This document shows, piece by piece, positions 6,088-61,121 of a DNA stretch of 64,000 nt (within the stretch, counting starts at the first letter, position 1; every line of letters begins with the position of its first letter). The stretch lies in the sequence record MW749003.1. One strand, 5' to 3'. The position numbers and the translations under genes are program-made. The notes beneath the pieces are model-generated. The model had not been told where the DNA came from. It did not search any database and worked only from the letters and a program-made list of their open reading frames with translations.

Positions 6088-9000
6088 ATGATGAAAATGG
6101 CAATTATTAAGAAAGATTATGAAACTATTCAAACTGAAAATGCTACAGAATATTATGATGAGGTTTTAAAGGAACGTGCTATTCCAGATCCTCGTGATGG
6201 ATTAAAACCTATTCACCGCAGAATTCTATGGGGTATGCATGTACATAAATGGGAATCAAATAAACCGCATGTTAAGTCAGCAAAAATTACGGGGAGCATT
6301 ATTGGTAAACAGTAGTTTCATTGCCTATCAATTATGATAGAGTATATAACTTAGCAATGAAATTCTTGCCGTCTTAAGTGGTAACATTTAAGATTATTAA
6401 TGGGGGATTAAGCTGGGAGGGTTTAGTTATCCTGATCAGAGTCCGAAGGATAAATGTAATAATTTATTCAGGCGCAACGCATAGATTGCTGAAACTTCAC
6501 AAGATGAAGAATATAATGTATCCACGAGACCCCATTAACCGTCTATTGTGAAATACATGGTTAAAAAGATATGCTATGCTGAGTTGGAAATGACCAACTG
6601 ATGAAAATGAGGGAAACCTCCAGAGCATAGGATAAAAAGCCTATGGTTAATAACTAACAGGAATATCATCCCCACGGAAATGCAAGCGTATATGAAGCAC
6701 TAGTAAAAATGTATCAACCTTGGTATGTCAATAAAAGCCTTATTGATGCTCATGGTAAGTAAAATCCTTTAATATTATATGAATACCGTCATATAATAGA
6801 TTAGGCTCGTTAAAGGATATGCCGTTTTGTATGGTAACATACATCATTATTACTGGGGGATTAAGCTGGGAGGGTATAGCCTATCCTGATCAGAGTCCGA
6901 AGGATGGATGTAATAGTCCATTCAGGCGCAACGCATAGATTGCTGAAACTTCACAAGATGAAGAATATAATGTATCCAAGAGACCCCAGTATCCATCTAT
7001 TGTGAAATACATGGATAAAAAGATATGCTATACTGGATTGGAAATGACCAATCGATGAAAATGAGGGAAACCTCCAGAGCATAGGATAAAAAGCCTATGG
7101 TTAATAACTATTAGAACTTTGGAAGTGTGTATGGGGATCCAGCCGCCGCTGAACGTTATAGTGAAGCTAGAATCCATAAATTTGCAGAAGAGGTTTTACT
7201 TTCAAATATTAATAAAAACATTGTTGATTTTGTTCCAAACTTTGATAATACTTTAGAAGAGCCAAAAGTATTACCTTCTATTCTTCCAATGATATTAGTT
7301 AATGGTAGTCTCGGTATTGCCGCTGGTTATGCAACCAACCAACATCCACATAATATTAATGAAGTTATTGATGAGACTATTAAGTATATTAAAGATAATA
7401 ACTATCAAATCAAGCTACTACCAGATTACCCAACTGGTGGAGTAATTATTAATAAAAGGCAAGTAGAAGAAGCATATACTACTGGTAAATCAAAGGCTAT
7501 TATTAGAGCAAGAATTACCAAAAATGAAAAGAAACATGAATTAGTTATTAGTGAGATTCCATATCTAAAAACATCTGATAAACTAATTGAATCTATTCAA
7601 AATGTAGCTAATGATAGAATTGAGAAAGGTAATAAGATTCCTAAGAAGATTGAAGGAATTAAGAATATTAAAAACCTTTCAGAGAAAGGTAAAATTAATA
7701 TTATTATTGAAGTAAAGAAAGGTTATGAGCTAGATTTAATTGAAAATCAATTATATAAATATACTAATTGTCAATTTACTCTACCAATGGACTTTAATGG
7801 AGTAATAGACAAGAAGTTTATTAACTTTACTAACGTCAACCAAATTGTTGCAGAATGGTTAAATTTCCGTATTGTTACTCTTAGACGTTTATTTACAAAT
7901 GATCTTAAAGATGCTAAGAAGAGAATTCATATTATTGATGGATTACTTACTGCGTTAGGTACTAATCTAGATCGTTTGTTAGATATTATCAGAACTAGTA
8001 AAAGTAGATCGCAAATGGTTGAAACTATTGTAAAAGAATTTAAAATTGAAGAAGATCAAGCTGAATATATTGTAAATATGAAATTATATCGTATTAACAA
8101 TATTGAAATTGATCAATTGAAAAAAGAAAGAAAAGACTTAGAAAAGAAATATAACGATACGGTATTATACTTTAAAGATGATAATAAGATTAATGAGTAT
8201 ATTATCTCTGAACTTGAAAATGCTAAGAAAAAGTTTGGTTGTGAACGAAAAACAACTGTTCTAGATTTAAATATAGAAGATATTAATAATAAAGAAAATC
8301 TTATTATTGACAGTAACCATACTTTCATTTGTACTAATCGTTATATTAAGAAATTAAATAATACTATCAAAGTTCAAAAACGTGGTGGTAAAGGAAATAG
8401 TATTGGTAAGATTAAATCTGATGATAATCCAATTACTATTTTTAATGCAAATAATAAGGATAATATTCTTATTTTTACGAATGCAGGAAAAGTTTATTCA
8501 AGAAAAGCTTATGAGATTGAAGGTTGTGAAATCCAATCATATGGCTATAATCTAAATAGTATTATTAAAGATGAAACTCTAACAAATGTCCTTGCAATGA
8601 CAGATGATGAGATGAATAATGAAAATATCAAAATTGCAATTGGTACTAGATTGAATAAAATTAAACTAGTGGATGTAGCAGAATTTAAGAATATTTATCA
8701 ATCAGGTATTATTGCAACTAAATTAAATGATGGTGATAGTGTTATCTTTGCTCAAAAAGTAGATATGAAAGGAAAGAATTCTATTATTGCTTGCACTAAT
8801 ACAGGAGCAACAATTAATATGTCACTTGACTCTATCCCAGTAGTTCTTCGCCCTACATTTGGTTCTAATATTTTTGATAATTCTATTATTAATAAAGGAG
8901 ATTATATTGCTGGTATTGATCTAGTAACAGAAGAAGTATCACATGCTTTCTTTATTAGTAAAAAAGGATTGGGAAAACGAGTTGAAATCTCTGAGTTCCC

Positions 9001-9229
9001 TGAACAAATCCGTGGTGGTAAAGGTCGAATTGGAATTAGAGCAAAAGAAAATGATGAAATTGTGAGAATTGTTTCTGTTAAACCGGATTCTGATTTAACC
9101 ATTATTAGTAATACTAGTATTATTGGAATGGACATTGATGAAGTAAGTGTATTACTCCGTCCAGCATTTGGTAACACTATTAAGAAATTAAATAAAGATG
9201 AGATTATTTTGGGAGCAACCGCTATTTAA
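6088..9229 (+). CDS. gyrA: DNA gyrase subunit A, three exons (6088-6306, 6661-6756, 7115-9229), about 809 aa
   Basis: RAIPDPRDGLKPIHRRIL; spliced IIG|EYHPHG and DAHG|NFGSVYGDPAAAERYSEAR (catalytic Tyr); C-terminal pinwheel with GyrA-box-like QKRGGKG. Confidence 0.95.
6307..6660 (+). mobile_element. Group I intron (family A, ORF-less) in gyrA
   Basis: Exon ends GGT(U), intron ends G; removal restores frame; R GCAACGCATAG and S AAGATATGCT; P3 TTAATGGGG/CCCCATTAA. Confidence 0.88.
6757..7114 (+). mobile_element. Group I intron (family A, ORF-less) in gyrA
   Basis: Same boundaries and core as 6307-6660 with compensatory stem changes (P3 TACTGGGG/CCCCAGTA); P1 ATGGT/GCCGT. Confidence 0.88.
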
Positions 9230-9322
9230 TTAGAGAAGACTATTAGTCTTCTCTTTTATTATATTGGAGGGAAATTAATATATGTATATAAGTACGCTTA
9301 AAAAAGGTCAAACGAAGGATAA

Positions 9323-9799
9323 ATGGGGGAAACTAAAATGATTCAAAAATTAATTAGTGGAGACTTCTTAAATAAAAAATTGGTATCTATCTCAAATATT
9401 CAACCGTATAATGTTCTTAATGAATATCTTGATAGAGAGAGCATTTATGACGATTATCCTGTGGTAAGAAATAAAGGTGAAATTGGTTTTACTGTAAAAG
9501 AAAGTGTCACATTTAAATTTGAGAATGATGTATGCTTAAATGTATTTGCCTTTTCAAGTGATGATCCAAAAATGGATTATAGTGTAACTGACTATAATGA
9601 AAATGATATTAGCATTAATTCACTAATTGGTAAGAAAATTAAGACATTTAGACAAATTGGGGAACAGGAATTTATTCTTATTTTTGAAGATAAATTAGAG
9701 GTTTATGTGGGAATTGATGATGGTATTTTAAATTGGGAAATTACTAAAGATGGTTCTTACTTTATAGAAAGAGATAAAGATTTGCTTGTTGCTAATTAA
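9323..9799 (+). CDS. Hypothetical protein
   Basis: 158-aa ORF, SD AAGGA. Confidence 0.65.
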   Translation: MGETKMIQKLISGDFLNKKLVSISNIQPYNVLNEYLDRESIYDDYPVVRNKGEIGFTVKESVTFKFENDVCLNVFAFSSDDPKMDYSVTDYNENDISINSLIGKKIKTFRQIGEQEFILIFEDKLEVYVGIDDGILNWEITKDGSYFIERDKDLLVAN

Positions 9800-9823
9800 A
9801 CGTATTAAAATGATTAACTAAAC

Positions 9824-9839
9824 ATATATTATCTTCCTG
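9824..9839 (+). promoter_or_regulatory. Early-type phage promoter
   Basis: ATATATTAT-N6-G; CGTATTAAA at 9801. Confidence 0.7.
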
Positions 9840-9868
9840 ATATTAACGAAATATTAGGAGGATAATAT

Positions 9869-10066
9869 ATGAAAAATTTTGAGAGTTTCTTTGTAAAGAT
9901 ATTACTATTAGTTTCAACATTCTTTTTGTCTATTTTTGCATATTATTATATGGATTCTGGAAAAGAGCTTATTACAGTATTACTTATATATCTCCCATTT
10001 GCTTTTGCAGTTTTATGGTCTGAAATAGTAAATTATTATAAAGATAAAAATAATAAACCGTATTAA
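9869..10066 (+). CDS. Small two-TM membrane protein
   Basis: SD AGGAGG; two hydrophobic segments. Confidence 0.7.
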   Translation: MKNFESFFVKILLLVSTFFLSIFAYYYMDSGKELITVLLIYLPFAFAVLWSEIVNYYKDKNNKPY

Positions 10067-10081
10067 ACTACCTAAGCAAAT

Positions 10082-10097
10082 ATATATTATAATCTTG
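10082..10097 (+). promoter_or_regulatory. Early-type phage promoter
   Basis: ATATATTAT-N6-G; CGTATTAAA at 10059. Confidence 0.7.
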
Positions 10098-10127
10098 ATA
10101 TAGTTAAAATAAAGGGAGAGATATATA

Positions 10128-10316
10128 ATGATTGAAAGTTTACAGAGAAAATTTAAATGGTTCAAAATAATAATGACTATTAGTACCATTATTGGACTAT
10201 TTATAGTATTGGGAATTCTATTTAGATTTGTATTGGCAATATTATTTTCTAAATTATTTTGGTTGGCTTTGATTATTGGATTCTTAGTATATGTGATTAC
10301 TAAAAGTAAAAAATAA
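10128..10316 (+). CDS. Small membrane protein
   Basis: SD GGGAG; long hydrophobic stretch. Confidence 0.7.
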   Translation: MIESLQRKFKWFKIIMTISTIIGLFIVLGILFRFVLAILFSKLFWLALIIGFLVYVITKSKK

Positions 10317-10333
10317 AAGTTATATAAAGGAGA

Positions 10334-10714
10334 ATGAATAAAATGAACTCAAGTAATTATGCAGTAGTAAGAGATTTAGAAAAAGAAGAGATTTTGATTG
10401 AAGAGAGAAAGACAAAAATTGAAAATTTCTTGAGTAACTTATACAATTATACATTCTTATCATTAATTGTAATTACAGTTATTATTTGTTCTTGGAAGAT
10501 GATTGATAACCATAATATCAATGTGCAATTTAATGATGCAAAGAAAGAAGAGATTATAGTTCAAAATGGGGAAACATTATGGACAATTGTTGATAAAACT
10601 AATTTCCAAAATGATTTAGATAAAGAAACTATTATCAGAAAAATTAGGGAAATAAATAATATGTCTACTAGTGATATTGTTGCTGGGGAAACTTTAGTTA
10701 TTCCAGTTAAATAA
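10334..10714 (+). CDS. Membrane-anchored LysM protein, YneA-like cell-division-inhibitor architecture
   Basis: Single TM (TFLSLIVITVIICSW) then LysM IIVQNGETLWTI...IREINNMSTSDIVAGETLVIP. Confidence 0.7.
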   Translation: MNKMNSSNYAVVRDLEKEEILIEERKTKIENFLSNLYNYTFLSLIVITVIICSWKMIDNHNINVQFNDAKKEEIIVQNGETLWTIVDKTNFQNDLDKETIIRKIREINNMSTSDIVAGETLVIPVK

Positions 10715-10740
10715 TAAATAAAATATGGGAGTGTTGTACT

Positions 10741-11112
10741 ATGAAGCAAACAATTTTTAACATTCAGGGGCATTCAAGTTATATAGATAATGGGGTTAAT
10801 ATTCCTCTTTCCTATGATGGAGATTTTGGAGGAAAGGATTTTAATATTCAGCTATTTGGTACAGCTCTCAATATTATATTAAATAAAGATTATAATTTTA
10901 TACAATACCTAGAATATATTGAACATTTTTCAGATGATATTAGTAAATTCTTTAACTCAAATTTATTAAATGATATTAAATCCGTAGAATTTTCTTGGAA
11001 GGATAATAAAATTCGATTTGAAGTTTCTTTAGTAGGTGGAAGAGTTTATTATTCAATTGGTTTAAATGGTGAGTCATATGGTTTAGAGCTAGAAGAAGTA
11101 ATAACAGGTTAA
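10741..11112 (+). CDS. Hypothetical protein
   Basis: 123-aa ORF, SD GGGAG. Confidence 0.65.
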   Translation: MKQTIFNIQGHSSYIDNGVNIPLSYDGDFGGKDFNIQLFGTALNIILNKDYNFIQYLEYIEHFSDDISKFFNSNLLNDIKSVEFSWKDNKIRFEVSLVGGRVYYSIGLNGESYGLELEEVITG

Positions 11113-11118
11113 TTAGTT

Positions 11119-11153
11119 AATAATGAGAGCTTATGCTCTCATTATTTTTTTTT
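11119..11153. terminator. Bidirectional intrinsic terminator
   Basis: AATAATGAGAGC/GCTCTCATTATT plus T-run between convergent genes. Confidence 0.7.
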
Positions 11154-12417: not shown

Positions 12418-12445
12418 TTAAAAACCTCCTTAACGTTTAATATCT

Positions 12446-32304: not shown

Positions 32305-35300
32305 ATGTCATTTTTTAAAGGTATTCGGAACATAGAAAGAGTTCAATATGATCTAGTGCAATATTGTGACAAGGAATTTGTTCCAAAATTTATAGCAAGT
32401 CAAAATATTGATGAAGATAAATTATACGATACTATTGATTTTAGTTTACAGTTAGCTGAAAAATTACATTTAGATTATAATATGTGTTTCACTATTGCAG
32501 TAATGCATGATTTTGGTTATATTGAGGAAGATGAAAATAATTTTAATACATTAATGAGCATAAAAGCAGATCAATTTTTATTGAGATATTTTGATGGAAG
32601 TCAAATGGAAATTATTGAGTCTGCTTGTAAAGAACACGATGGTACAAGTAGAGAAACAGGAATATTTACATCTTTATATTCAAAGGTTATTGCAGATGCA
32701 GATAGGATGTCAATATTAAGAATTGAAGCTATGATTCGTCATTATTGGAAATTCTATTCTAGTCAAAAGGCATTTTCTAATACAGATGAGCGTCCTAATA
32801 AACTAACAGATAAAGAAATTTTTGATAAGATGTATAGTTTTCTTAAAAAAGAGTATGGTACAATTGTATCAAAAAATAAATTATTGTTAGAAGCATCAAG
32901 AGAAATGATGAAAGATGAAATAGAGAATTCTAATAAAGTATTAAGCTCTGAAGAAGACACAAAAAGAATGGTTCTACATTTAGCTACTTATGGGGAAATC
33001 CAAATAAATAATGATGGAACGCTTACCGTAGAAAAAATAACTAAAGAGCCAATCAGTGAATCAGATCCTTTTGAATTATTTGAAAAAAATATAAAAGAAT
33101 CAGTAGATGAACAACTACTAGAAGCCGCACCAAAGAATCTATCAAAGAGACAAAAGGTAGAAGATTTAATATATAAGGTACTTTCAGTTTTAGATGATAC
33201 TGGAGCTAACTTGAGAAAATATAAAGAGTTCTTTGGTAAAATGAACGATGAACAATTTGATAGATATATGAAAAAATTCCTAAAAGATGAAGATGAAAAT
33301 TTTTATCTTGAAATTTTACCTAATAAAAGTGAACCTTCATTAAAGCAAATTAAAAAAGCACTAGATATCTTAAAAGTACCAACTGATGAATATGTATATC
33401 TTCGACATGATGGTCATAAAAATGATCCTATTAGAACTGCATATAAAGTACCTGTTGGTTATATTACAATTAAGCGGGTACAACAGATCCTAAGTAAAAA
33501 GAATACTTATTCTCTTGATATTGCACAAAGAAACATGAAATCGGGTTATAATTGGCTCTCCATTATAGCAATATAATGGCAAACACTCTCCTTAATTTCT
33601 GGGATATCCTAATTTTTAGGACAATCAGAAGCGAATTTGAATAAAAACCTAATATTCAAAACGTTCAACGACTATCCGAAAGCAATCATACGATTGTGAG
33701 TAGCGGTGAAATTCCGCAATAGGAGTACGGCTCAAGCTATTGGAGTGGGTGAGAATCCCTTAAATGGAAACAGGAGGTATCCTTAACGGATAAAGATATA
33801 GTCTCGTCTCTATGGTAACATAGAGCAGTTCATAAGAGAACGCAGTAGATGTAGCGAGTCTACTGGAAGATACGCAAGTTACAGGTAATGACAAAATTGC
33901 CAGAATATCTGATATTGAATCATATAGTCTTGTTGCTATAGGAGCTGATAATGCTTTAAAAGAATTCCTTGGACCACGAGCTAGATTATTGGCTCGTAAT
34001 TTCCTTAATTGCTGGAAACTCCTTAGAGCTTATTAGACCACAACGTGACTGGTAACAGTGAGCGTGAAGGTTATAAGAACTAATAAGATTGGACAATCAG
34101 CAGCTAAGCTTTTATATAATTCTTTAAAAGAGCTGACAATGCTAAAACAAAAATATATTTAAATTTAGTGTTGGAGGTAATTAAATTTTATGCCTAGAAG
34201 AAAAAGCAATGAGGAATTTATGAATGAAGTTATAGAGTTAGTAGGGGAAGAATATACATTTTTAGAGAAGTATGTACGATCACTGACTAAAATAAAGGTA
34301 AAGCATAATATTTGTAATAATATATACATGGTTACTCCTAATGATTTCCTAAATGGTGGAAAAAGATGTCCTAAATGTACTGTTCAAAAAATGGCTGATC
34401 GGTCAAGAATGACAAATGAGGAATTCATTAATAGAGTAAAAAAAGTAACTAAAAATGATTATACCTTTCTAGAAAAATATAATGGTACTAATAACAATTT
34501 AAAAGTAATTCATAATATTTGTGGATATAAATATTGTGTATCACCTAATAATTTCCTAAATGGTGGAAAAAGATGTCCTAAATGTGCTAATAATATTAAA
34601 AGAACAAATAAGGAATTCGTTAATGAAATTAGCAAATTAGTAGGAGAAGAATATACTTTTTTAGATGAGTATATAAATACTGATACGCCTATAAAAATTA
34701 TTCATAATATTTGTGGTCATAAATATAAAACTTCCCCTAAAGAGTTTATTCATAGAAATTCTCGTTGTCCAAAGTGTAATTTTCTTAATAATGAATCTTT
34801 CTTTTCTAAAGTTATAAAAAAGACATTAAATGAATTAAATATTTATTTTATTCAAGAATATTCTATTAGAGAGTTGGGTAAAGGTAAAAAATTTGATTTT
34901 TATATACCTAGTTTAAACCTATTAATAGAGTATGATGGTAGCCAACATTTCTACCAAAAATTTAATGATAAAAATGGTTTCTTGTCACAGATAAAAAGAG
35001 ACCAAGAAAAGAATGATTTTATAAAAAATAGTGAATACACTTTGATTAGAATAAGTTACAAAATCAATAAAAACCTAGACATAATAATTAAAGAATTAAT
35101 AAAAGAAAGTTCAACGACTATCGAAAAATATAATCTATTATTAATTAATAAAAATAATGTAGTAAATTTTAACAAATATTACAAGAATGCTAATATTAAT
35201 TATTTTGATTATATTAAGTAGAGTACCCTACAAGCTATTGGTAGTATACTTCTGGGATGAAGTATAGTATAGAAAATTTTCTATATTGGGAAACAGGAAA

Positions 35301-35614
35301 CTTAGAAGATATAGTCTCAACTTCTATGGAAACATAGAGCAGTTCATTAATACTATTTTAAATAGTATTATGAGAACGCAATGAGTGTAGCGAGCTCATT
35401 GGAAGATAACTTGGATAACTCTGTAGCAAAGACAGATATGTATAAAAATATTAATTTATATGGATATACTTATCTAAAAGATTTAGGTCATGATATTACT
35501 GAAAATCAAACTCTTAATACCATGTATGTATATCTAATGGGTGCTGGATTAGGGAATGATTTATTAAAAGAGGATACTAATTTAGAAGAACTATTAGATA
35601 AAAAAGGAAAGTGA
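32305..35614 (+). CDS. Virion-type RNA polymerase beta C-terminal subunit with N-terminal HD-like domain; exons 32305-33546, 33875-33982, 35414-35614 (516 aa)
   Basis: AVMHDFG...HDG...IADADRM (HD); spliced KVPVGYITIKRVQQ...RNMKSG|QVTGNDKIARISDIESYSLVAIGADNALKEFLGPRA|DNSVAKTDMY parallels RpoB VTVGYMY...QPLGGK...[29 protein letters not shown]. Confidence 0.8.
33547..33874 (+). mobile_element. Group I intron (family B, ORF-less)
   Basis: GGT|...G| boundaries; P4 TTTCTG/CAGAAG; R GTTCAACGACTA and S AAGATATAGTC. Confidence 0.9.
34146..34157 (+). promoter_or_regulatory. Intron-internal late promoter for the homing endonuclease
   Basis: AACA-AAAATA-TA about 33 nt before ATG 34190; SD GGAGG. Confidence 0.55.
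34190..35221 (+). CDS. Intron-encoded homing endonuclease, Zn-repeat plus Vsr-like (EDxHD-type) domain
   Basis: Three EYxFLExY...HNIC...P..F...RCPKC repeats; FDFYIP..NLLIEYDGSQH...RDQEKND. Confidence 0.85.
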   Translation: MPRRKSNEEFMNEVIELVGEEYTFLEKYVRSLTKIKVKHNICNNIYMVTPNDFLNGGKRCPKCTVQKMADRSRMTNEEFINRVKKVTKNDYTFLEKYNGTNNNLKVIHNICGYKYCVSPNNFLNGGKRCPKCANNIKRTNKEFVNEISKLVGEEYTFLDEYINTDTPIKIIHNICGHKYKTSPKEFIHRNSRCPKCNFLNNESFFSKVIKKTLNELNIYFIQEYSIRELGKGKKFDFYIPSLNLLIEYDGSQHFYQKFNDKNGFLSQIKRDQEKNDFIKNSEYTLIRISYKINKNLDIIIKELIKESSTTIEKYNLLLINKNNVVNFNKYYKNANINYFDYIK

Positions 35615-38340: not shown

Positions 38341-39003
38341 ATGTCATATATTGAAATCGATAAAGAATTTTTTATTAATAATATTCAGCCAGAGTTTGAA
38401 ACTGATTCAGAAATTAATATTCAGGGTAGATCTAAACTTAGATATGGTGCATCAATGTTAGAATTAAATCCAAATTCACTAGAATGGGATGACTTAGAAA
38501 AAATATATGACATTGCTCAGAATAAAGGCAATAGGTCTGTTATGATGCAAGTTTCAGCGATCAAGAATTTAATCTCTGACTTTGAAGGAGCTAAGATAGC
38601 TAATTTAAAAGCACTTGCAGTTGCACTACCTTCATACTTTAGTGATAATTTAATTGACGGATGGATTTATTCTTTGGATAGAAAAAATAATCCAGTCACA
38701 GTTGATCCATACTTAATTACAGATATTCGCTACTATCCTCCTAAAAAGGATGATCCAGCGTCTGTTTCTATTAGATTAGTTGCTAATTCACCTCGTCAAA
38801 GTAGCCGCGATAAACGTTATACACGTAGTATCTATTTTGATAGTAGTGATATCAGAGGGAAAACAATTCCTCAAATACTGGCAAAAGAGAATCTGTTTCA
38901 TGAAACAGAGGAACTAAAAAATATCTATCTAGAACAATTAGAATTATTTAATAAATATCAACCTCAAAAAACGAAGCAATGGTTATATAGACATAGCAAC
39001 TAA
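38341..39003 (+). CDS. N-terminal part of a probably frameshift-split AAA+ ATPase gene
   Basis: SD AAGGAGG; the +1 frame opens at 38942 and runs into the AAA module. Confidence 0.55.
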   Translation: MSYIEIDKEFFINNIQPEFETDSEINIQGRSKLRYGASMLELNPNSLEWDDLEKIYDIAQNKGNRSVMMQVSAIKNLISDFEGAKIANLKALAVALPSYFSDNLIDGWIYSLDRKNNPVTVDPYLITDIRYYPPKKDDPASVSIRLVANSPRQSSRDKRYTRSIYFDSSDIRGKTIPQILAKENLFHETEELKNIYLEQLELFNKYQPQKTKQWLYRHSN

Positions 39004-39088
39004 AAATAGATTTATCAATGATGAAGGAATAATTAAACGAGTTTTTAATGAAGAGTATGATCCTTATTACTGGAGAAACGAAGCAGGA

Positions 39089-39916
39089 GTGGACAAAAAA
39101 TTTGATAGAATTCCACAACATTGCTATATTTTTGGTTTTAACTTAGATACACATAAATATACATGGGTACATGCTACTAATATGAAACCATATGAATACG
39201 ACACTGGTCTAAGAGATAAGCTAATACTCCCTCAACGACATAAGGATTTAATTGACATTCTAGTAAGTGATCTTGATATTCTTAAAGAAGATATAATTGA
39301 AGGTAAATCTGGTGGAACTACTATATTAGCTACAGGCAAACCGGGACTTGGTAAGACTCTTTCAGCAGAAATTTATTCTGAAGCAATTGAAAAACCACTA
39401 TATAAAGTTCATTCAGGGCAATTAGGATTGAGCTCAAAAGATGTTCAAGAAAATCTAGAAGTAATATTAAAGAGAGCTTCACGTTGGGGAGCAATTGTAT
39501 TATTAGATGAAGCTGATGTTTTTATTAGAGAAAGAGGAAATGATTTGCAACAAAATGCTGTCGTTGCAAGCTTCTTAAGAACACTGGAATACTTTGATGG
39601 TATTTTATTTATGACAACTAACAGGGAATTTGATGTAGATGATGCTATTAAATCAAGATGTATTGCTGTTATTAGATATGAAACACCTTCTGAAGAAGAT
39701 GCTAAAAAAATATGGAAAGTATTATCTACTCAATTAGAAGTAAACCTTAGTGATGAATTAATTGATCAGTTAGTGCTTAAGTTCCCAGAAGCATCAGGAC
39801 GTGATATTAAAGAACTATTAAAACTTACATCAAGATTTGCCAAAGGAAAAAATGAAGAAATCTCATTAGAACTGTTTAGACAGTGTGCTCAATTTAGAGC
39901 TATTAAAATCAAATAG
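39089..39916 (+). CDS. AAA+ ATPase module (frame open from 38942)
   Basis: GKPGLGKT Walker A, IVLLDEAD Walker B, FMTTNR sensor 1, KSRC Arg finger. Confidence 0.85.
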   Translation: MDKKFDRIPQHCYIFGFNLDTHKYTWVHATNMKPYEYDTGLRDKLILPQRHKDLIDILVSDLDILKEDIIEGKSGGTTILATGKPGLGKTLSAEIYSEAIEKPLYKVHSGQLGLSSKDVQENLEVILKRASRWGAIVLLDEADVFIRERGNDLQQNAVVASFLRTLEYFDGILFMTTNREFDVDDAIKSRCIAVIRYETPSEEDAKKIWKVLSTQLEVNLSDELIDQLVLKFPEASGRDIKELLKLTSRFAKGKNEEISLELFRQCAQFRAIKIK

Positions 39917-43643: not shown

Positions 43644-46600
43644 ATGGATGACATCAGTGTAATTAAGAATGAAGATTATGAAGGTTCACATAGATTTTTA
43701 GCAGAGGAATTACTAATGCCTAATGCAAATAAAACAGATGGTAATAGATCTACAATGTTCTGCTCTCACTTAGCACAGGCAGTAACTCTACAAAAGGCTG
43801 AACCGCCATTAGTCTATACTAACTTTGAGAATCAAGTTGGAAAGTATTCAACTGCAGGTTATAGAAAGGCTAATAGTAATTATAAGGTTATTGAAAAAAT
43901 TTATAAGAATGATTATAATTATGTACTTATTGTACAAGATCAGGAAACTGGGGAATATACACTATTTGAAAGAGCTGAATGTGAGTTTTTAACTGAACAT
44001 TATGGTTTTCAATGGGATAATGATAAAATTGATTCATTAAAGAAAGATGATACAATTGAAAAAGATACTGTATTATATAAGAATACCTGTTATGATGAAA
44101 ATATGAATTTTGGTTATGGTGTTAATTTAAATGCTGCATATTTTAGTTATAAGAATGAAACATTAGAGGATGCTATTGTAATCTCTGAAAGTGCCGCTAA
44201 AAAGCTAGGAACATATAGTGTTAACAAAGTAAAAGTATCTGTCAATACAAATGATATCTTGCTTAACCTATATGGTGATAATGAGAACTATAAAGGATTC
44301 CCAGATATTGGAGAACATATTAAAAATCAGATTATTGCTAGCCGTAGAAGATTTGATTATAACACTGCATTATATGAATTAAAGAATCTAAATGAAATGA
44401 GAGATTCAGATACTCCATTCTTTGCTGATGGTAAGATTGTAGATATTGAAATTTTCTCTAATGTACCTGAAGAAGAATTAAAAGTACAGAAGTATAATGA
44501 ACAAGTTCTATACTATATTAATAAACAAAAAGAATTTTCTAATAATGTTTATCAAAAACTTAAAAAGATTGTAGAAGATAAAGATAGTAACATTTCAGAC
44601 AAGCTATTGCACTTCTATAATAATTGTAAAATGAGAATTGATGAAAATATTTCTTACACTTATCAGAATAGTAAGTTTAGTGGTTTTATTATGGAATTCA
44701 CAATTTTAGAGGAAGAACCATTAAATAAAGGAAGTAAGATTACAGGTAGATATGGTAATAAAGGTGTAATTAGTAAAATACTCCCTGATGATCAAATGCC
44801 TACTGTGGCTGAAGGACGTTTTAAAGGACTCAAGGCAGACATTTGTCTTAATCCTCTTGGTGTATTTAATCGTTTAAATTTAGGCGATTTAAAACTCTCT
44901 TAATTGCTGGAAACTCCTTAGAGCTTATTAGACCACAACGTAATCGGTGACGATAAGCGTGAAGGTTTGAAAACTAATAAGATTGGACAATCAGCAGTTA
45001 TTAGGCTTAATTTTTAAAAATCCTCCACAATTAAATGAACAAATAAATATGAATTATTCATTTTAGGGGGGATTTTATGAAAAGAAAAATTTATAATGAG
45101 GATATTATTTCTAAAGAAGTTAGTATAATTAATCCTGAATATGAATATGTTAAATTAATAAAACTAAAAGGTGTTCATTCAAAAATATTGATCAATCATA
45201 AAACATGTGGTAGAAATATTGAAATTATTTTCAATAACTTTAAAAATGGTAGAATCTGTAAATATTGTAGTAAGAATTGTATAGATGAGAAATCTTTTAG
45301 AGAATTAGTCAAAGAAGATACCGACTATATTTTTGAATCATTTATTTCAATGAATAAAAAAATGACTGTAACACATAAAAAATGCAGATATGTCTATGAA
45401 GTAAGACCATCAGATTTTGTCTATAATAAACATAGGTGTCCAAATTGTTCCAATCGTATAGCATATACTGAAAAAACTTTAAGTAAAAAAATAAAAAGCA
45501 TTGATTCAGAATATGAGATGATAGAAACAATTGATGGCTCTGGAGTAAGATCAAAAATAAAATTAAATCATAAGAAATGCAATAAATCCTTTCAACTTAT
45601 TGCAAGAAACTTTTTGATTAATAATCAAAGATGTCCATATTGTTATAGTAAAAGGATGTTTAATCCGTCATTTGATTCTAAAGGAATTAAAAAGATAAAA
45701 GAATGGCTGGATAAAGAAGGATTTAAATATGAAACTGAAAAAACTTATGATGATTTGATTTCTCCATTCTCAAATAAGAAATTAAGATTTGATATTTTTC
45801 TACCACATTTAAATACACTGATTGAATTTGATGGAAAATTCCATTTCAAGTATAGTAACTCTAGTAAAATATTCTCCAAAGAAAATTTAGAAAAAACTAA
45901 AATTAGAGATGAAGTCAAGAATCAATATTGTAAAGAAAATAATATAACACTTTTAAGGATTAGTTATACTGATAATATTCATTATAAATTAGATAAACAT
46001 TTTAAGTCTAATAATTCAACGACTATCGAAACCACTCTAGCAGATCATAGTTAGAAGGAAGGGAGTAGAGTACAGCCAAGCGGTAGAGGTATTCCGTAAT
46101 AAGGTTATAATTCCTCTTTAAATGGAAACAGAGAGTTAATGAAGATATAGTCTCATCTCTATAGAGATATAGAGCAGTTCATAAGAGAACGGCATGAAAG
46201 TAGCGACTTCATGTGAAGACAATGTGAATCCAAGTCAGTTAATAGAACAAGAATTAAACTGGATTGCTAAATTCATTAGAAAAGATATGGAAGAAGCAGG
46301 AAGTAATGAAGAAAAAGTTAGCATCTTACTTGATTTCTTAAATAGAGTGAATAAAGAAGAAACTGAATTAATGGAAGAATTCATTAATAGTCTAAATAAA
46401 ACAGAATTAGAAGAGTTTCTAAATGATATTATTGAAAATGGAATTCCTATCTGTCAAAAGCCATTCTTCGGTAATATTGGTTTAGATGAACTTTGGGAAT
46501 TATATGATCATTATAACCATATTGATTACTTTAAATGTGAGGGAATTAGTACTCCTTTAATTATTGGAGAAATTTATATGGTTAGATTAAAACATGAGCC

Positions 46601-48541: not shown

Positions 48542-51185
48542 TTGGATAAACTTAAAATTCAGAAATTCATTATAAGTCTTAAACAAAAGAAAAATTTGAG
48601 TGCAGAAAAATTAGAAGAGGTCAAATCATTTCTAGATAAGGCTTCAGAAGCCTATTATAACACTGGGCAAGAAATCTTATCTGATGATGAATTTGATGCC
48701 ATTGCCAGAGAATTTAAACGTTTAGGTGGTAAATTAGATGTAGGTGCTAATCCACCTAAAGGAAAAGGAACAGTAGATGTATCTCATACATTTGCTGAGT
48801 TAGTTGGTACATTAGATAAAACAAATTTTATTTATGAAAAGAACGTTGATGATCCAAGCAAGAAGAGTGTAGAAGAATGGCTAAACAATATTATCAAAAA
48901 GTTAGGGAATGATAAAGAATTTAGTCTAGGTATCAGTTTTAAATTTGATGGTAATTCGGTTGTTATTGAATATAAAGATGGAAAAGTAGTTAGAGCATTA
49001 ACAAGAGGTAGAAATGGTCTAGGAATGGATTTAACTCATGTCTTTAAAGATCATAATATTAAAAGAAAAGATCATGTAGGAATCAAATATGAAATCATTA
49101 TTCCTTGGAAACGTTATGAAGACTTAATGAAAGATACTGGTGTATCATATGCTAATCCTAGATCATTAGTATCTGGTAAATTAGGTGACGATAATGCTTA
49201 TGAGTATTATAAATATATGGAATTAGTTCCATTATGGGTAAAACCTTACAATTCAACAATGGAAAGAACTGAACAGCTAGAATTTATTGAAGAAGCATTT
49301 GGGGAAGATAATAGTTTATTCAGTGATTATAGATTGATTGAAGGAGTAACAGGAAATAATTTAACTCCTTTTATGGAAGAATTAGAAGATATGTATGAAA
49401 AATATAATATTGAAAGATATAATCTTCCATTTATGATAGATGGTTTAGTTATTGAAGTATTAGAGGAAGATATTAGAAATACATTAGGGTATGTAAATGA
49501 TGAACCTAACTGGGCGACTGCTTTAAAATTCCCTTATATGGAAAAAACTACTACTGTAACTGATTTTGATTTTACATTAGGTGACTCAGGAATTATTACT
49601 GCAAGAGTCTGGTATGAACCAGTAACTTTTAATGGAACTGAACACCGAAAACAATCTCTTCAGAACTATAAGAGATTTAAAGAGTTGGGTTTAGGAATTG
49701 GTAGTCAAATCTTGGTTCAATATCGTAAATAAATTGCGATTCATATCAGTAATGATATGTCTAAACTCTCTTAATTGCTGGGACACCCTTAGAGCCTATT
49801 AAACTAAAACGTAACTGGTAACGGTAAGCGTGAATGTTTTAAAAATTAATAGGATTGGGCAATCAGCAGCTGTCAAACATTAATGGACGAAATTTTTTAT
49901 TGGAATATGACGGACATTATCATAAAACTGGTTGGAAAGGAAATCCTAAAAGTAAAGAAATAGTAGAAAAACATGATATGACCAAAAATATTTTCTGTCT
50001 AAAGAATAATATTTTTCTTTATCGAATTCAATCAGACAAAGAAACAAATGAACAAAAAATACTTAATGAGTTAAATTTAATGTTTGGTAGTTCAACGACT
50101 ATCGAAAATCTTAAAAAAGATGAGTAGAGTACCCCACAAGCGATTGGTGGCATAATTCTGGAATGAATTATGGTATGGAATACTCCATATTGGGAAACAG
50201 AGAGTACCCTAAGAAGAATTATTAATTAAATTATTAGGGTATTGATATAGTCTCAACTTTAGGGAAACCTAAAGCAGTTCAAAAAGAACGGTATGAATCT
50301 AGCGAATTCATATGAAGTATATTGAATGATTGTCTTACCTATGTTGTTCCAATTTTAAATGAACACAATAAAAATATCGCTCCTCACCCTTATACTGATA
50401 AATGTCCAGTATGTGATGGTGAAGTTGGGATTACTAAAACTGGTGCTTTCGCCTATTGTAAGAATGAAACATGTGAAGGTAAAACAGTAGGTAAAATTCA
50501 GAACTATTTAACTAAGATGGATATTAAAGGGATTAAAGAATCAACTATTGTCAAACTTCATAATGCAGGATTAGTAAAAAGTATCACTGATCTTTATACA
50601 ATGGATTATGGAAAGATTGCTGAAGTAGACGGTTTAGGAGCAATTGCTTCAATTAATATTAGTGGTGCTATCAATAGTAAAATTCCATATGACTATGAAA
50701 TTATTGGTGCATTAGGTATTAGTAGTTTTTCTACATCCAAAGCTAAAGAACTTTGTAAAGTATTTTCTGTTCAAGAAATGCTTGATATACTTGAGTGTTA
50801 CTATCCTGAAAATCTAATTAACAGTATTACTCAACAAGAAGGATTTTCTGATATTACCGCTAACTATATTGTGGAAGGCTTACAAAAGAATAAAGAAACT
50901 ATTGAATTTTTATTAAAAAGAGAACACAAAGTCTTTAAAACAGAATATGAAAAAATGGCTGGAGTACAAGCTATGAAAATTGTTTTTACTAACTTCCGTG
51001 ATGAAGCAATGCAAATTCAATTAGAGATGGCTGGTCATAAAATTACAAGTGCAGTCTCAAGAAAAACTAATATTGTCGTAACCCCTAATCCAAACGGAAA
51101 TACAGTTAAATTAAAGAAAGCAAGAGAATATGGAATTCGAATTGTAAGTGTAGATGAGTTTAAAGAAGAAATGGGAATTAGCTAA
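48542..51185 (+). CDS. ligA: NAD-dependent DNA ligase; exons 48542-49726 and 50325-51185 (681 aa)
   Basis: AYYN...SDDEFD; KFDG; ALTRG; IDGLVI; WATALKF; spliced VQYR|NDCLTYV (motif VI); Zn finger CPVC...C...C; HhH; BRCT. Confidence 0.92.
49727..50324 (+). mobile_element. Group I intron (family B) with truncated endonuclease remnant
   Basis: P1 ATCGT/GCGAT; AATTGCTGG, AATCAGCAG, GTTCAACGACTA, TTGATATAGTC; ends G. Confidence 0.88.
49855..50127 (+). pseudogene. 5'-deleted homing endonuclease remnant
   Basis: Only LLEYDGHYH...HDMTKNIFC..NNIFLYRI remains; no Zn repeats, SD or internal promoter. Confidence 0.75.
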
Positions 51186-54906: not shown

Positions 54907-55026
54907 ATAAAATAAGTAATTAAAGGAGGTGTTTAAAATGTAAATTATATTAAAATCGGTATAATAGAAAGAGAGAATTTAAATTGGGAATATACAAGTA
55001 ATACAAAAATTAGGAGGAATTTCAAC

Positions 55027-57024: not shown

Positions 57025-57052
57025 TTATAATACTTGGGAGGAAAAATTACAA

Positions 57053-57090
57053 AAAGCCATACTAATTAGTATGGCTTTATTTTTTTTTTT
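57053..57090 (+). terminator. Intrinsic terminator
   Basis: AAAGCCATACT/AGTATGGCTTT plus long T-run. Confidence 0.75.
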
Positions 57091-57248
57091 AAAAAAAAAG
57101 GAGAGCATTAAAATGGTTCAGAAATTCTTTTAATAATTAATAGTGATGTTACTATTAGTATTCTTAAATAACCTATTTGAAAAAATATTAGAAATTCAAG
57201 AAAAAATTAATGAATAGTTATTTACCGTATTAAAAATATTTTTCAAGC

Positions 57249-57264
57249 ATATATTATATTCCTG
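57249..57264 (+). promoter_or_regulatory. Early-type promoter
   Basis: ATATATTAT-N6-G; CGTATTAAA at 57226. Confidence 0.7.
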
Positions 57265-57301
57265 TAATATCAGACTATTTAAAAGAGGAGGAATATAATG
57301 T

Positions 57302-57646
57302 ATGCCTAACACCAAATCAGTACTGACAGAATTCAAAGATCCTCTACTGGTTACGAATCATTTCACAAAAGAAAAACGAATTTTTCTAAGAAAGACGCTT
57401 GGTGAAGATTATAGTATCCTAAGTAGCTCTGAATTTATTAATGAAATTGATAATGATCCATTAGAATTTCTTGATAGAAAGGGGGTTAATAAATACGATT
57501 TGGTAATATTTGATACTGGTAGTAATATAAATGAAAAAATTCTAGACTCAGTTTCCTCAAAACCACTAACTCTTCAAAGAACCACAAAAACTACTCCATC
57601 ATTCAAGCTTCTAGAATTTCATAATGATAAATTTAATATAATTTAA
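57302..57646 (+). CDS. Hypothetical protein
   Basis: 114 aa, SD GAGGAGG. Confidence 0.65.
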   Translation: MPNTKSVLTEFKDPLLVTNHFTKEKRIFLRKTLGEDYSILSSSEFINEIDNDPLEFLDRKGVNKYDLVIFDTGSNINEKILDSVSSKPLTLQRTTKTTPSFKLLEFHNDKFNII

Positions 57647-57713
57647 AATAAAAGGATAATCTTAGTGATTATCCTTTTTACATATTCAAAGATTTTAATG
57701 GGGGAATATTGGA

Positions 57714-58040
57714 ATGGATATTAATGGTAGAGTAATATTAGCCGCAATTGCGGTTATTGTGGGAGGTACAGTATTAATTAGTATAATACCTTTCTCAAGC
57801 TTTATAATTATTGCATGTATAATAGGAGCTGTAATACCTTGGATTCTTCCTAGAAGGAATGAACAAATTCAACAATACAACCAAGAACAAGAGTATTATA
57901 TAAAATTAGAAGAAGAGAATTTAAAACTTAGAGAACAGTTAAACCTAGAAGAAGAAAACCTAAGATTAAAAGAAAGATTAAAACTAGAGGAAGAAAATCT
58001 AAAACTAAGAGAAGAATTAGAAAAATTAAAGGAGAAATAA
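57714..58040 (+). CDS. Membrane protein with repeated coiled-coil tail
   Basis: Hydrophobic N-terminus; three 13-aa repeats. Confidence 0.7.
   Translation: MDINGRVILAAIAVIVGGTVLISIIPFSSFIIIACIIGAVIPWILPRRNEQIQQYNQEQEYYIKLEEENLKLREQLNLEEENLRLKERLKLEEENLKLREELEKLKEK
57903..58019 (+). repeat. Three degenerate 39-nt (13-aa) tandem repeats
   Basis: KLEEENLKLREQL / NLEEENLRLKERL / KLEEENLKLREEL. Confidence 0.85.
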
Positions 58041-58042
58041 AA

Positions 58043-58759
58043 ATGAAATTAACAGAAATTAAAAAAGAAGATAAAATTATATTGGTTGAAAAATGCAAAG
58101 AATTACTTAATCTAAAAGATGCTAAACTCCCAGATGAGTATTATTATTCCAGTCTTGCTTTATGTGTAATTGACTCTATCTTTTCTATTAATTCCAATTA
58201 TACAAGTGTGAAAAATGTAATTAAGCGTTATTGCACTTATTTTAATATTAACCCATTAAGAGAAAGTAGTTCATTCCCTAGTACATCTAATCAGTTATCT
58301 GTAAAAAGTTTTATTGATTCTTATGAAAAAATAGGGGTAGATTTTTACACTCAAAAAATCTTTAATAATAGACAACGAACTTCAGCAGTTAATGGAATAT
58401 TAAAATCTGAAGCTGTTTATGAGTTTTGTAAAGTTCTAAATAAGTATAATATTAATTATTTTCAAGATGTAAAAAACATATATGGTAATAAGGAATTTGA
58501 AAAAGATATTAGAAGTATTAAGGGTCAAGGAAAAGGAGTTTCGTTATTATACTTCCTTATGCTTTCTGGTGAAGAAGATAAAATAAAACCAGATAGAATG
58601 ATAATTCGCTTTCTTGAAGAGATCCTTCAAAGAAAGATTAATATAAATGAATCACAGATATTACTTAAAGAGGCATCATTAATACTATCAAAAGAATATC
58701 CAAATTTGAGTCCAAGATTATTGGATTATACAATTTGGGAATATGCTAGGGGAAATTAA
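58043..58759 (+). CDS. HhH-GPD superfamily DNA glycosylase-like protein
   Basis: IRSIKGQG (helix-hairpin-helix), KPD with Asp at the catalytic position, LDYTIW C-terminal helix. Confidence 0.6.
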   Translation: MKLTEIKKEDKIILVEKCKELLNLKDAKLPDEYYYSSLALCVIDSIFSINSNYTSVKNVIKRYCTYFNINPLRESSSFPSTSNQLSVKSFIDSYEKIGVDFYTQKIFNNRQRTSAVNGILKSEAVYEFCKVLNKYNINYFQDVKNIYGNKEFEKDIRSIKGQGKGVSLLYFLMLSGEEDKIKPDRMIIRFLEEILQRKININESQILLKEASLILSKEYPNLSPRLLDYTIWEYARGN

Positions 58760-58961
58760 AAACCATAATTTCACTATGGTTTTTAATATAAATTTTTAAA
58801 AATAATTACTATGATTTCTTAAAAGACAGTGATGATTATGAAAAATTTCAATTAATTAATTTGGTTTAACCTTTATAGATGATTCAACATCAAATTCTAT
58901 CACGGTCTCTTGGCAATAAATTAAAAGACATTATAAGGGAATTCCCTTATAATGTCTTTTC

Positions 58962-59654
58962 CTAATAGATATATAATTTTTTTCTATTTGCTTGTTTTGC
59001 TACATTCTGTCTCCACTTATCTAATAACTCTTGTTTTCTATCTGTTGCTTCTTGTAATTCATCTACGAATAATTCAATATTACCAAATGCAGTTTGGAGG
59101 TTTGCAAACCGTTTTCTAATTTGATATAATACTTCTTTCGTATCATATAATGCTAATTTTAGAAATTCAGTTTGAAGGTTAGTTGGAATTGTACCAAAAT
59201 GATCTGGATGGACAACATTTAATAAAAGTTTTGTTTTTCTAATAGTATATAAAGCAGGGGTTATAGTAATAATATTTGGATAAGTAAATTGGTAAGTCAT
59301 TGGGTTTCTATTCATTGATGATAGATCAGCTTGTATTTGTCTACTCACAGGATCAATCATATTATTACTATAAGGTACTAATTCTGCACCAAAGTATCTA
59401 GTTGTATTATCATACATTCTTGCTACGTTTAATATATTATAATTAGTATTAATATAATATTGGTTTCCAGTTCCTTCAACTTTATCTTCATTTGATATAA
59501 TAGCTTCAACTTGATAAGGGAAAAAATTACTAAATGTAACTAATGTTTCTTCTTTAATATTATCAATAATTTCATCTGGATCCATTTCAAGTTCATTAAA
59601 CTTATAACCTAATTTTTTTTCTATGAACCGAAGGATATAGGTACTAGATAACAT
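58962..59654 (-). CDS. Putative neck/head-completion protein (T4 gp13-like)
   Basis: ILRFIEKKLG..FNELEMDPDEIID.I...L..F and FLKLALYDTKEVL.Q.R..F...FG.I......QEA...K.EL parallel the gp13 termini; lies in head-gene cluster. Confidence 0.5.
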   Translation of the reverse strand: MLSSTYILRFIEKKLGYKFNELEMDPDEIIDNIKEETLVTFSNFFPYQVEAIISNEDKVEGTGNQYYINTNYNILNVARMYDNTTRYFGAELVPYSNNMIDPVSRQIQADLSSMNRNPMTYQFTYPNIITITPALYTIRKTKLLLNVVHPDHFGTIPTNLQTEFLKLALYDTKEVLYQIRKRFANLQTAFGNIELFVDELQEATDRKQELLDKWRQNVAKQANRKKLYIY

Positions 59655-59674
59655 ATTATCAACCCTCTCTATTA

Positions 59675-59917
59675 TTAACTGGTAGAACTAATAAAGTCTA
59701 CATCCTTCTTAGGAATATCTTCAATTTTTGAATAACGTTTACTCATAGCTCTATGAGTATAGCAATAATATTCTCCATCTTTATTTTTGGCAAAACTACA
59801 TTCGGTTTTCCCAAATTTATTTTCAATATATTCTTTTTCTTTTGGAGTTAAGGGAATATGCTGAATTGCTTCACTTAATAACAAACTTTCATTAATCATT
59901 TTAAATTTTTTATTCAT
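59675..59917 (-). CDS. Small late protein
   Basis: SD AGGAGG; N-terminal INE/LSE. Confidence 0.65.
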   Translation of the reverse strand: MNKKFKMINESLLLSEAIQHIPLTPKEKEYIENKFGKTECSFAKNKDGEYYCYTHRAMSKRYSKIEDIPKKDVDFISSTS

Positions 59918-59971
59918 AATATCCTCCTGTAATTTAATATGGTTACTCTAATTATAGAGTAACCATTTATT

Positions 59972-61121
59972 TTAAAATTGAATTAAAAGGAAATTATCAA
60001 TTTCTTTTTTAATTTCATCTTCAATAAATAAAACAGCTTTACCGTCTTCAGTATTAAAACTAACTGTTTTACCATCTTCACCTAATTTGGCAGTTCTTTC
60101 ATCTAAACCAAGATGATCAACTGTTGTTTTAATATTTTGACTCTCTTCCTTAATGTAATTAAGGATTTCATCTTGAGCCACTGACACCATTAGACCTTCA
60201 TTAAGAATTCTCTTATTCATAGGATGAATAGCATCTTCTTTAATAATATTTGTCTGATAAGCATTAGAATGAGAAGGGAAGATTACCCAATCCCAAGTAA
60301 CAATGTGAAGAGGTTTTTCAACTCGTGTTAGTCCATTCACTTTACGAGTAACACCACCAAGACCTCTCATTGAAAATGCTACTTCAGTACCTTGTCTAAT
60401 TAAACCTTCCATATCTTTACCAACAGCAGTGTTAGTAGTTGCTACCACACCTTTTAGTAATTTTTGTTCCCACCATAATTTCTCAATAACATGAGACATT
60501 CTAGTTTGATCAATGTATGTCTGTCTTTCCATTTTATCCGAAAGAGGGTGCAAATATCTTCATATGGATTCGCTACTTCCATACCGTTCTCTTATGAACT
60601 GCTCTAAGTTTCCCTAGAGTTGAGACTATATCAAGTTCTTCAGCATTACTGTTAAGAACCTCTCTATTTCCACTATGCTTATAGTGTACTCCCATTTGGG
60701 ATAGTCGTTGAACTCCATTGGTAAATATTTGTACATATATTTTACCAATAAAGCTGCTGATTGTCCAATCTTATTAGTTCTTATAACCTTCACGCTCACT
60801 GTTACCAGTCACGTTGTGGTCTAATAAGCTCTAAGGAGTTTCCAGCAATTAAGAGAGTTTAGACATAGTATTTCTACTATGAATGGCAACCCTACCAGCC
60901 TCTCCGAACAATGATTTACGTCTTAACTTTTCTTGAATTTGAGGAGAACGAATAGCACCATCTAATGCTTCAAATGCATATTCCCTTCTATTTCTATTAC
61001 CAGCTTCTGCCTCTTGAAGAATAGCTTCAATTACAACATTATCTTTATTATGCTCAATAATATTAGGTTTAACTGGTTCTGATGTAGATTCAATAATTAG
61101 AAAACCACAATTTTGATCCAT
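59972..61121 (-). CDS. Prohead protease (T4 gp21-like); exons 61121-60894 and 60550-59972 (268 aa)
   Basis: AGNRNRREY; spliced LFGEAG|HP (catalytic His); AFSMRG (Ser); WDWVIFPS (Asp). Confidence 0.9.
60551..60893 (-). mobile_element. Group I intron (family B, ORF-less) in prohead protease gene
   Basis: GGT|...G| boundaries; P1 TGGT/GCCA; AATTGCTGG, AATCAGCAG, GTTCAACGACTA, TTGATATAGTC on minus strand. Confidence 0.9.

Follow-up and report, generated by a model that had tools for sequence, protein, structure and literature searches.

The 64,000-nucleotide (nt) stretch of DNA analysed here, to which we refer as the window, is identical (100%) to positions 186001-250000 of the genome of Bacillus phage vB_BspM_Internexus (MW749003.1). 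Internexus is a Takahashivirus, that is, a jumbo phage of the AR9/PBS1 type, and the window is 90-97% identical to the corresponding sequences of AR9, PBS1 and Goe21. Five genes in the window are interrupted by a total of seven insertions. The gyrA gene and the homologue of AR9 g078, which encodes an HD-domain protein resembling the beta subunit of virion RNA polymerase (RNAP), contain two insertions each, and the genes for the non-virion RNAP beta C-terminal subunit (beta-C), the NAD-dependent DNA ligase and the prohead protease contain one each. No introns are annotated in the Internexus record, where the exon pieces are entered as separate coding sequences (CDSs). Our analysis makes it very probable that each of the seven insertions is a self-splicing group I intron, that they fall into two sequence families, referred to here as gyrA-type (both gyrA introns) and core-type (the other five), and that they are ordinary mobile, largely selfish elements.

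The junctions were read from the sequence and compared with the uninterrupted alleles of relatives, and protein searches were performed with single exons or, by reference, with the uninterrupted Goe21 orthologues. An earlier, sequence-only reading of the window had placed seven insertions at particular residues of these proteins, and both junction reading and alignment to the uninterrupted alleles locate every one of them there. The features are listed below in window positions, with I1 and I2 for the first and second intron of a gene, ORF for open reading frame, aa for amino acids and a vertical bar for the point of insertion in the protein.

6097..6306, + strand: gyrA exon 1, 70 codons, ending in ...SIIG; RNA contigs stop or join at its end
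6307-6660, + strand: gyrA I1, 354 nt, gyrA-type group I, ORF-less, G|EYHPHG
6661..6756, + strand: gyrA exon 2, 96 nt, 32 codons, between both introns (PDB sequence search)
6757-7114, + strand: gyrA I2, 358 nt, ORF-less paralogue of I1, HG|NFG
7115..9229, + strand: gyrA exon 3, starting with NFGSVYGDPAAAERY (ORF list and sequence)
32305..33546, + strand: exon 1 of the AR9 g078 homologue, HD-domain/virion RNAP beta-like (AR9 annotation; junction compared with intronless Goe21)
33547-33874, + strand: g078 I1, 328 nt, core-type group I, ORF-less, SG|Q
33875..33982, + strand: g078 exon 2, 108 nt, 36 codons (aligned to Goe21)
33983-35413, + strand: g078 I2, 1431 nt, core-type group I with a homing endonuclease ORF, RA|D
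34190..35221, + strand: homing endonuclease ORF in g078 I2, 343 aa
35414..35614, + strand: g078 exon 3 (sequence and comparison with Goe21)
43644..44874, + strand: exon 1 of the non-virion RNAP beta C-terminal subunit (AR9 g089 homologue), last full codon Arg
44875-46224, + strand: non-virion RNAP beta-C intron, 1350 nt, core-type group I, boundaries predicted, RL|NP
45077..46054, + strand: endonuclease ORF in the non-virion RNAP intron, 325 aa
46225..46991, + strand: non-virion RNAP beta-C exon 2 (sequence and comparison with relatives)
48542..49726, + strand: NAD-dependent DNA ligase exon 1, ending in ...ILVQYR
49727-50324, + strand: ligase intron, 598 nt, core-type group I, YR|ND
49855..50127, + strand: endonuclease remnant in the ligase intron, 90 aa, C-terminal part alone
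50325..51185, + strand: ligase exon 2, starting with NDCLTYVVP
60894..61121, - strand: prohead protease exon 1, ending in ...FGEAG
60893-60551, - strand: prohead protease intron, 343 nt, core-type group I, ORF-less, AG|HP
59972..60550, - strand: prohead protease exon 2, starting with HPLSDK... (Pfam Peptidase_S77 on the intronless Goe21 orthologue)

At all seven sites the last base of the 5' exon is a U, as required for the G.U wobble in P1, and the last intron base is a G (omega-G). The exon lengths also add up to those of uninterrupted genes: 1242 + 108 + 201 = 1551 nt for g078 (uninterrupted Goe21_00920), 1231 + 767 = 1998 nt for beta-C (AR9 g089), 1185 + 861 = 2046 nt for the ligase (Goe21 ligA) and 228 + 579 = 807 nt for the protease (Goe21_01300). 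For beta-C, agreement with the U(-1)/omega-G rule depends on the register chosen. The cut at 44874|46225 falls inside a Leu codon (CGT T|TG AAT) and is alone in giving both U(-1) and a terminal G; an alternative register, with the intron at 44877-46226 (44876|46227), yields an identical protein. By reading the sequence, we further noted a P1 helix of 7 base pairs (AAUCGUU/GGCGAUU), closed by the same 8-nt loop as in both g078 introns, and a P10 helix of 5 base pairs (UGAAU/AUUUA). The register 44874|46225 is preferred because of this P1/P10 pairing together with the U/G rule.

Both gyrA introns are joined out exactly in RNA. The RNA data consist of contigs rather than raw reads, from which abundance cannot be inferred, and come from four runs of two studies, a 2017 single-organism study and a 2024 food-fermentation metatranscriptome. 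The exon joints 6306>6661 and 6756>7115 are found in four runs from the two studies, and the exon letters in the joint-bearing contigs are those of the intron-bearing allele, not of the intronless Goe21 allele. The food-fermentation contigs also contain back-joined RNAs, with the I2 joints 7114>6757 and 7114>6758 and with the last G of I1 (6660) joined to approximately position 6339. These joints suggest intron circles, some of full length and some truncated, that are closed at the terminal G, as happens with group I ribozymes. Protein-independent self-splicing is reported for the AR9 introns in later papers.

One metatranscriptome contig, from run X3 (window 6277-6331), follows Internexus up to position 6331 and from there resembles the Goe21 allele, in which I1 contains a LAGLIDADG ORF. 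Food fermentation samples therefore harbour gyrA I1 both with and without an ORF.

The core-type introns are recognised by the Rfam group I model (RF00028, Intron_gpI), depending on how the sequence is scanned. A cmscan of the whole 64-kb window reported no intron, either at the gathering cut-off or at E<=10, while scans of 0.4-1.4 kb stretches recovered five introns, two of them above the gathering score; because the short stretches match, the blank result for the whole window reflects a filter effect and not the absence of introns. The two introns that exceed the cut-off of 50 bits are g078 I1 (85.4 bits in a search of the complete record, at record positions 219537-219825, window 33537-33825) and the protease intron (a full-model match of 70.3 bits, E 5e-18). 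The three ORF-split introns give partial matches of 21-33 bits, which include 3' core matches for the ligase intron (32.7 bits, E 1.5e-6) and the non-virion RNAP intron (32.5 bits, E 4e-6) as well as two separate segments of g078 I2 (window 34010-34143 and 35305-35337).

Sequence comparisons place these five introns in one family with nearly identical cores. The 5' halves of the three ORF-split introns are 83-100% identical to the protease intron, with g078 I2 matching the AR9 protease intron at 100% over 102 nt, and with values of 83-89% for the ligase and non-virion RNAP introns (89% for the latter against the AR9 protease intron). Two short segments, AACGACTAT and GATATAGTC, occur once each in every core-type intron (5/5) and have no other copy in the window. 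Moreover, the 5' part of the ligase intron is approximately 88% identical over 108 nt to an nrdE intron of phage Twort. We infer that the five core-type introns self-splice in Internexus.

Other kinds of intervening sequence were also considered. Group II introns are excluded, since the boundaries do not fit the 5' GUGYG and 3' AY consensus and no Rfam scan of the window or of the intron stretches gave a match to a group II family; the group II intron of AR9 sits in a different RNAP gene. A reading of the insertions as inteins was likewise rejected.

The two gyrA introns, which are approximately 90% identical to each other, form a separate family with a wide distribution. Homologues of I1 occupy the same G|(E/R)YHPHG site in Bacillus phage BpSp and Yersinia phage phiR1-37, and other gyrA-type homologues split the terminase gene of a Clostridium phage and a Staphylococcus phage tail gene. 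A 26-nt module, GATGAAAATGAGGGAAACCTCCAGAG, located at window 6600-6625 and 7054-7079, is found exactly in at least 107 IMG/VR contigs. To describe the fold of this family, an alignment of 48 distinct ORF-less gyrA-type cores (A2) was analysed for covariation. The named helices P2, P3, P6a, P7, P7.1, P7.2, P8, P9, P9.1 and P9.2 are paired in 81.7% of cells, compared with 63% in shuffled controls and 32-47% with slid partners, and none of 500 shuffles reached the observed score. Changes on both sides were seen for 43 of 55 pairs. The two P3 strands are fully complementary (7/7) to their own partner in 20 of the 48 sequences, compared with 3.4% for foreign partners. The pairing counts for the named helices understate P3 and P4, which MAFFT misaligns in part of the family, and P4/P5 were read by eye only. 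P3 crosses P7 in the manner of the pseudoknot typical of group I introns. A group I fold, including the P3/P7 pseudoknot, is thus supported for the gyrA-type family, and the presence of helices between P7 and P3' suggests its placement in subgroup IA. Together, the Rfam matches, the covariation and the RNA joints bear out the group I label that the sequence-only reading had given to all seven insertions.

Two introns contain a full-length endonuclease ORF, one contains a remnant and four are ORF-less, so the earlier count of five introns lacking an intact endonuclease was correct. Aligned from end to end, the endonucleases encoded by g078 I2 and by the non-virion RNAP intron show 31% identity, and both match phrog_559 (E 6e-84 and 3e-57, respectively). 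Each comprises repeated zinc-ribbon modules followed by a C-terminal nuclease domain. In Pfam, the g078 I2 protein weakly resembles a treble-clef zinc finger and a PvuRts1I-like nuclease, and its AR9 counterpart, g079, the ORF of the g078 intron, is annotated as a homing endonuclease. The 90-aa ORF in the ligase intron matches phrog_7140, phrog_559 and phrog_9084 only at profile positions close to the C-terminal nuclease region.

In all three ORF-bearing introns, the endonuclease frame crosses the J6/7-P7 core of the ribozyme, TTCAACGACTATCGAA, which is read as ..SSTTIE.. (shared stretches at window 35100-35221, 46005-46054 and 50080-50127). As the frame runs through J6/7-P7, protein and ribozyme use a common sequence.

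The occupancy of the seven sites differs between Internexus and its closest relatives. The presence/absence comparison proposed by the sequence-only reading, made across AR9, PBS1 and Goe21, reveals a polymorphic intron set:

gyrA I1: present and ORF-less in Internexus; present in AR9/PBS1; present with a LAGLIDADG ORF in Goe21
gyrA I2: present in Internexus; present in AR9/PBS1; absent in Goe21
g078 I1: present and ORF-less in Internexus; present in AR9/PBS1 (the PBS1 copy with an endonuclease); absent in Goe21
g078 I2: present with an endonuclease in Internexus; present with an endonuclease in AR9/PBS1; absent in Goe21
Non-virion RNAP beta-C intron: present in Internexus; absent in AR9/PBS1; absent in Goe21
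Ligase intron: present in Internexus; absent in AR9/PBS1; absent in Goe21
Protease intron: present in Internexus; present in AR9/PBS1; absent in Goe21

Five of the seven introns are already annotated in AR9. Its record (KU878088) contains joined CDSs for gyrA (g044, three pieces), g078 (three pieces) and the prohead protease (g114, two pieces), and labels g079 with the note 'group I intron'. In later papers, Lavysh et al. 2016 (Virology 495:185) is cited for intron-disrupted genes of AR9, including two introns in gyrA, and for an experimental determination of mature AR9 mRNAs. The sequence-only reading had counted a prior description of the same set in relatives as evidence against its proposal, and such a description largely exists; it does not extend to the introns in non-virion RNAP beta-C and the ligase, which are new. 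AR9 and PBS1 have introns at the other five sites (two in gyrA, two in g078 and one in the prohead protease gene g114), and the gyrA and protease intron sequences are 99% identical to those of Internexus, whereas their beta-C (g089) and ligase (g095) genes, each with an intron in Internexus, are uninterrupted. We refer to these two as private introns: among 50,697 phage records, no other record covers at least 80% of either. The exact 20-21-mer junctions of both are also absent from IMG/VR, which is a weak negative.

The exon sequences around the junctions bear a mark of intron movement. Mismatches between intron-bearing and intronless alleles cluster within approximately 16 nt of the junctions. 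For example, the intron-plus and intron-minus protease alleles differ at 10 positions within 16 nt of the junction and at one position in the other ~450 nt. At g078 I1 and gyrA I2, serine codons switch family, the recoding being synonymous. Such clustered recoding is what homing with co-conversion classically leaves behind, and homing is its probable cause.

With regard to density, the sequence-only reading had called seven introns in 64 kb very dense for a phage. This holds in comparison with most phages, but it is not special to the window: RF00028 matches over the cut-off number 15 in the whole Internexus genome (26 at E<=10) and 12 in that of AR9, counts that omit gyrA-type and ORF-split copies. 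Intron density is thus genome-wide and typical of the genus.

The insertions fall into highly conserved parts of their host proteins. The 32 codons of gyrA exon 2 align to residues 76-107 of E. coli GyrA, which is in essence the quinolone-resistance region and lies a short way upstream of the catalytic Tyr. In the protease, the first residue after the cut is a His that the alignment pairs with residue 104 of the 5JBL chain (T4 gp21); judging by the chain length and the mutant concerned, we take this residue to be the mutated catalytic His85 of T4 gp21. In the ligase, the cut lies inside a block that aligns to E. coli LigA RRAGD (RRA|GD), which is motif VI. The last Arg of non-virion RNAP exon 1 corresponds to R410 of AR9 (PDB 7S00 chain C) and to R1106 of E. 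coli beta, within LNPLGVPSR. For g078, a profile of 17 homologues identifies the C-terminal domain as a piece of RNAP beta, not beta-prime (E ~2e-4). Its exon 2, bracketed by both introns, matches the 'GEMEVWALEAYGA' region of the RNAP beta C-terminus (E ~2e-4), and the introns flank a block aligning with FGEMEVWALEAYGA...KS|DD. An assignment of this 36-codon exon to the beta-prime trigger loop was dropped after the 17-homologue profile had matched the 'GEMEVWALEAYGA' region of RNAP beta. The view that the introns target catalytic motifs is accordingly justified at four sites and a little too broad for those of the virion RNAP, where the bracketed region is very conserved rather than strictly catalytic.

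These observations can be accommodated by a homing cycle. An intron-encoded endonuclease would cut the intronless allele of a co-infecting relative, and repair would then copy in the intron together with a few flanking exon bases. The ribozyme would subsequently remove itself from the mRNA, so that the essential gene would keep working. Active-site sequences would be occupied as the most conserved targets, at which imprecise loss of the intron would kill the gene, and most copies would since have lost their endonuclease. A preference of phage introns for the most conserved DNA of essential genes is described in a recent review (PMC12908238).

Several points weigh against this interpretation. 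RNA joints cover two of the seven introns: the exon joining anticipated by the sequence-only reading was found exactly, in contigs, at both gyrA junctions. For the two private introns splicing is predicted from structure and homology, because no relative has the same intron, and in the non-virion RNAP the splice register is ambiguous in the DNA itself. The gyrA introns gave no RF00028 match at E<=10 in a 931-nt scan; 17 loci with gyrA-type relatives also gave none, under stricter filters. The non-virion RNAP intron ORF has no Pfam match, and activity of the two full-length endonucleases is a prediction. Finally, the recoding near the junctions could alternatively stem from selection for P1/P10 pairing or from cleavage escape of intronless alleles.

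Three other explanations of the interruptions were weighed against mobile, largely selfish introns. According to one, the interruptions are not spliced at all, and the genes are translated in separate pieces or have become pseudogenes. The Internexus record does list the pieces as separate CDSs, and RNAP genes of jumbo phages are naturally split, but this explanation has next to no probability: the gyrA exons are precisely joined in RNA contigs, neither the 96-nt nor the 108-nt exon has its own start codon, the sequences between the exons match group I ribozymes, the exon sums equal the lengths of uninterrupted orthologues, and the AR9 record annotates joins. Scarcely more credible is the proposal, made in the sequence-only reading, that splicing serves as a shared regulatory checkpoint coordinating replication, transcription and head maturation. 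In its favour, each of the five genes is essential and has its insertions in exons that are critical for function, and the near identity of the core-type cores means that one factor could in principle affect all five together. Nevertheless, the checkpoint is unsupported, and it is hard to square with sister phages that lack most of the introns. The intron set is not conserved, with summary counts for absence of five of seven in Goe21 and two of seven in AR9 and PBS1, and therefore no common splicing dependency has been kept by selection; in addition, the intron families occur in hundreds of unrelated phages and genes, and the sequence contains no element that would link splicing to a signal.

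A role of the intron endonucleases as weapons is a less distant prospect, though we still consider it unlikely. By analogy with other phages, the enzymes from the non-virion RNAP and virion RNAP introns might cut the intronless essential genes of co-infecting phages similar to AR9, PBS1 or Goe21, from which Internexus would benefit over and above the selfish spread of the introns. Two endonuclease ORFs are full-length, sister phages of the same host offer intronless targets, and metatranscriptomes with more than one gyrA I1 allele suggest mixed populations. There is also a precedent, in that the intron endonuclease of phiPA3 is reported to act against phiKZ (Birkholz et al. 2024, as cited in PMC12908238). 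Five of the seven introns, however, lack an intact endonuclease, so that two at most qualify, and the classic marker exclusion by SPO1 introns gave no fitness gain, according to the same review. Mobile, largely selfish group I introns thus remain the preferred reading of the seven insertions.

Known phage introns offer several parallels to this arrangement. Phage Twort (nrdE, orf142), like Internexus, has several introns in one gene, and the core-type introns, which are ~88% identical over 108 nt to an nrdE intron of Twort, have additional helices between P7 and P3' when aligned to the Rfam model; the Twort introns include a subgroup IA2 ribozyme with a crystal structure. The host genes differ, however, and some Internexus copies contain an endonuclease with zinc-finger and Vsr/PD-(D/E)xK-like domains, whose frame runs through the ribozyme core. 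With the phiPA3/phiKZ pair, Internexus shares an endonuclease-bearing group I intron in a multisubunit RNAP gene of a jumbo phage, for which close relatives provide intronless targets; competition was shown in that system and is conjectured in Internexus, and the phage lineage and host differ. Phages phiR1-37 and BpSp have a homologous intron at the same gyrA site, which in phiR1-37 contains an ORF in the P1 loop region, and BpSp, like Goe21, lacks gyrA I2. Compared with PBS1, the difference lies in g078 I1, which carries an endonuclease there and is ORF-less in Internexus. In the Staphylococcus phage MarsHill, gyrA is interrupted by an intein instead of an intron, and the MarsHill paper describes this gene as a repeated target of mobile elements.

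What is new here are the two private insertions, the re-annotation of the record and a family of introns invisible to Rfam; the remainder repeats findings made in AR9. In the re-annotation, 13 separate or hypothetical Internexus genes become five intact essential genes, two endonucleases and one remnant. The private introns further provide an intron-plus/intron-minus pair (Internexus versus AR9, PBS1 or Goe21) for work in B. subtilis, a tractable system where homing and intron-mediated competition could be tested on genes for RNA polymerase and ligase. On the side of method, every intron was missed by the whole-window Rfam scan, short scans found five of them, and the gyrA-type family escapes Rfam altogether though it is common in phage metagenomes. 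A broader proposal, tentative and rather doubtful as a whole, joins two parts: the private introns would be recent invasions of new sites, giving Internexus the means to convert or damage intronless alleles in competitors resembling AR9, PBS1 and Goe21 during co-infection, and the gyrA-type introns would be a widespread, Rfam-invisible subclass of phage group I introns, with an invariant 26-nt P9.1 module in at least 100 IMG/VR contigs, which would accumulate as circular RNA.

Two further differences from the relatives were noted elsewhere in the window. The segment 24184-24407 is 82-84% identical to SPO1-like phages (Grass, SBSphiJ); at this site AR9, PBS1 and Goe21 have a poly-gamma-glutamate hydrolase gene, which Internexus does not have there. 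The gene for an AAA ATPase (AR9 g083 homologue), which is 1647 nt long in AR9 and Goe21, is divided into two ORFs in Internexus (38341-39916). This split (38341-39003 and 39089-39916) was considered as an eighth intron and discarded, as the sequence has a deletion of ~68 nt relative to AR9 and Goe21; either the gene is frameshifted or truncated, or the assembly is wrong, and no intron is involved.

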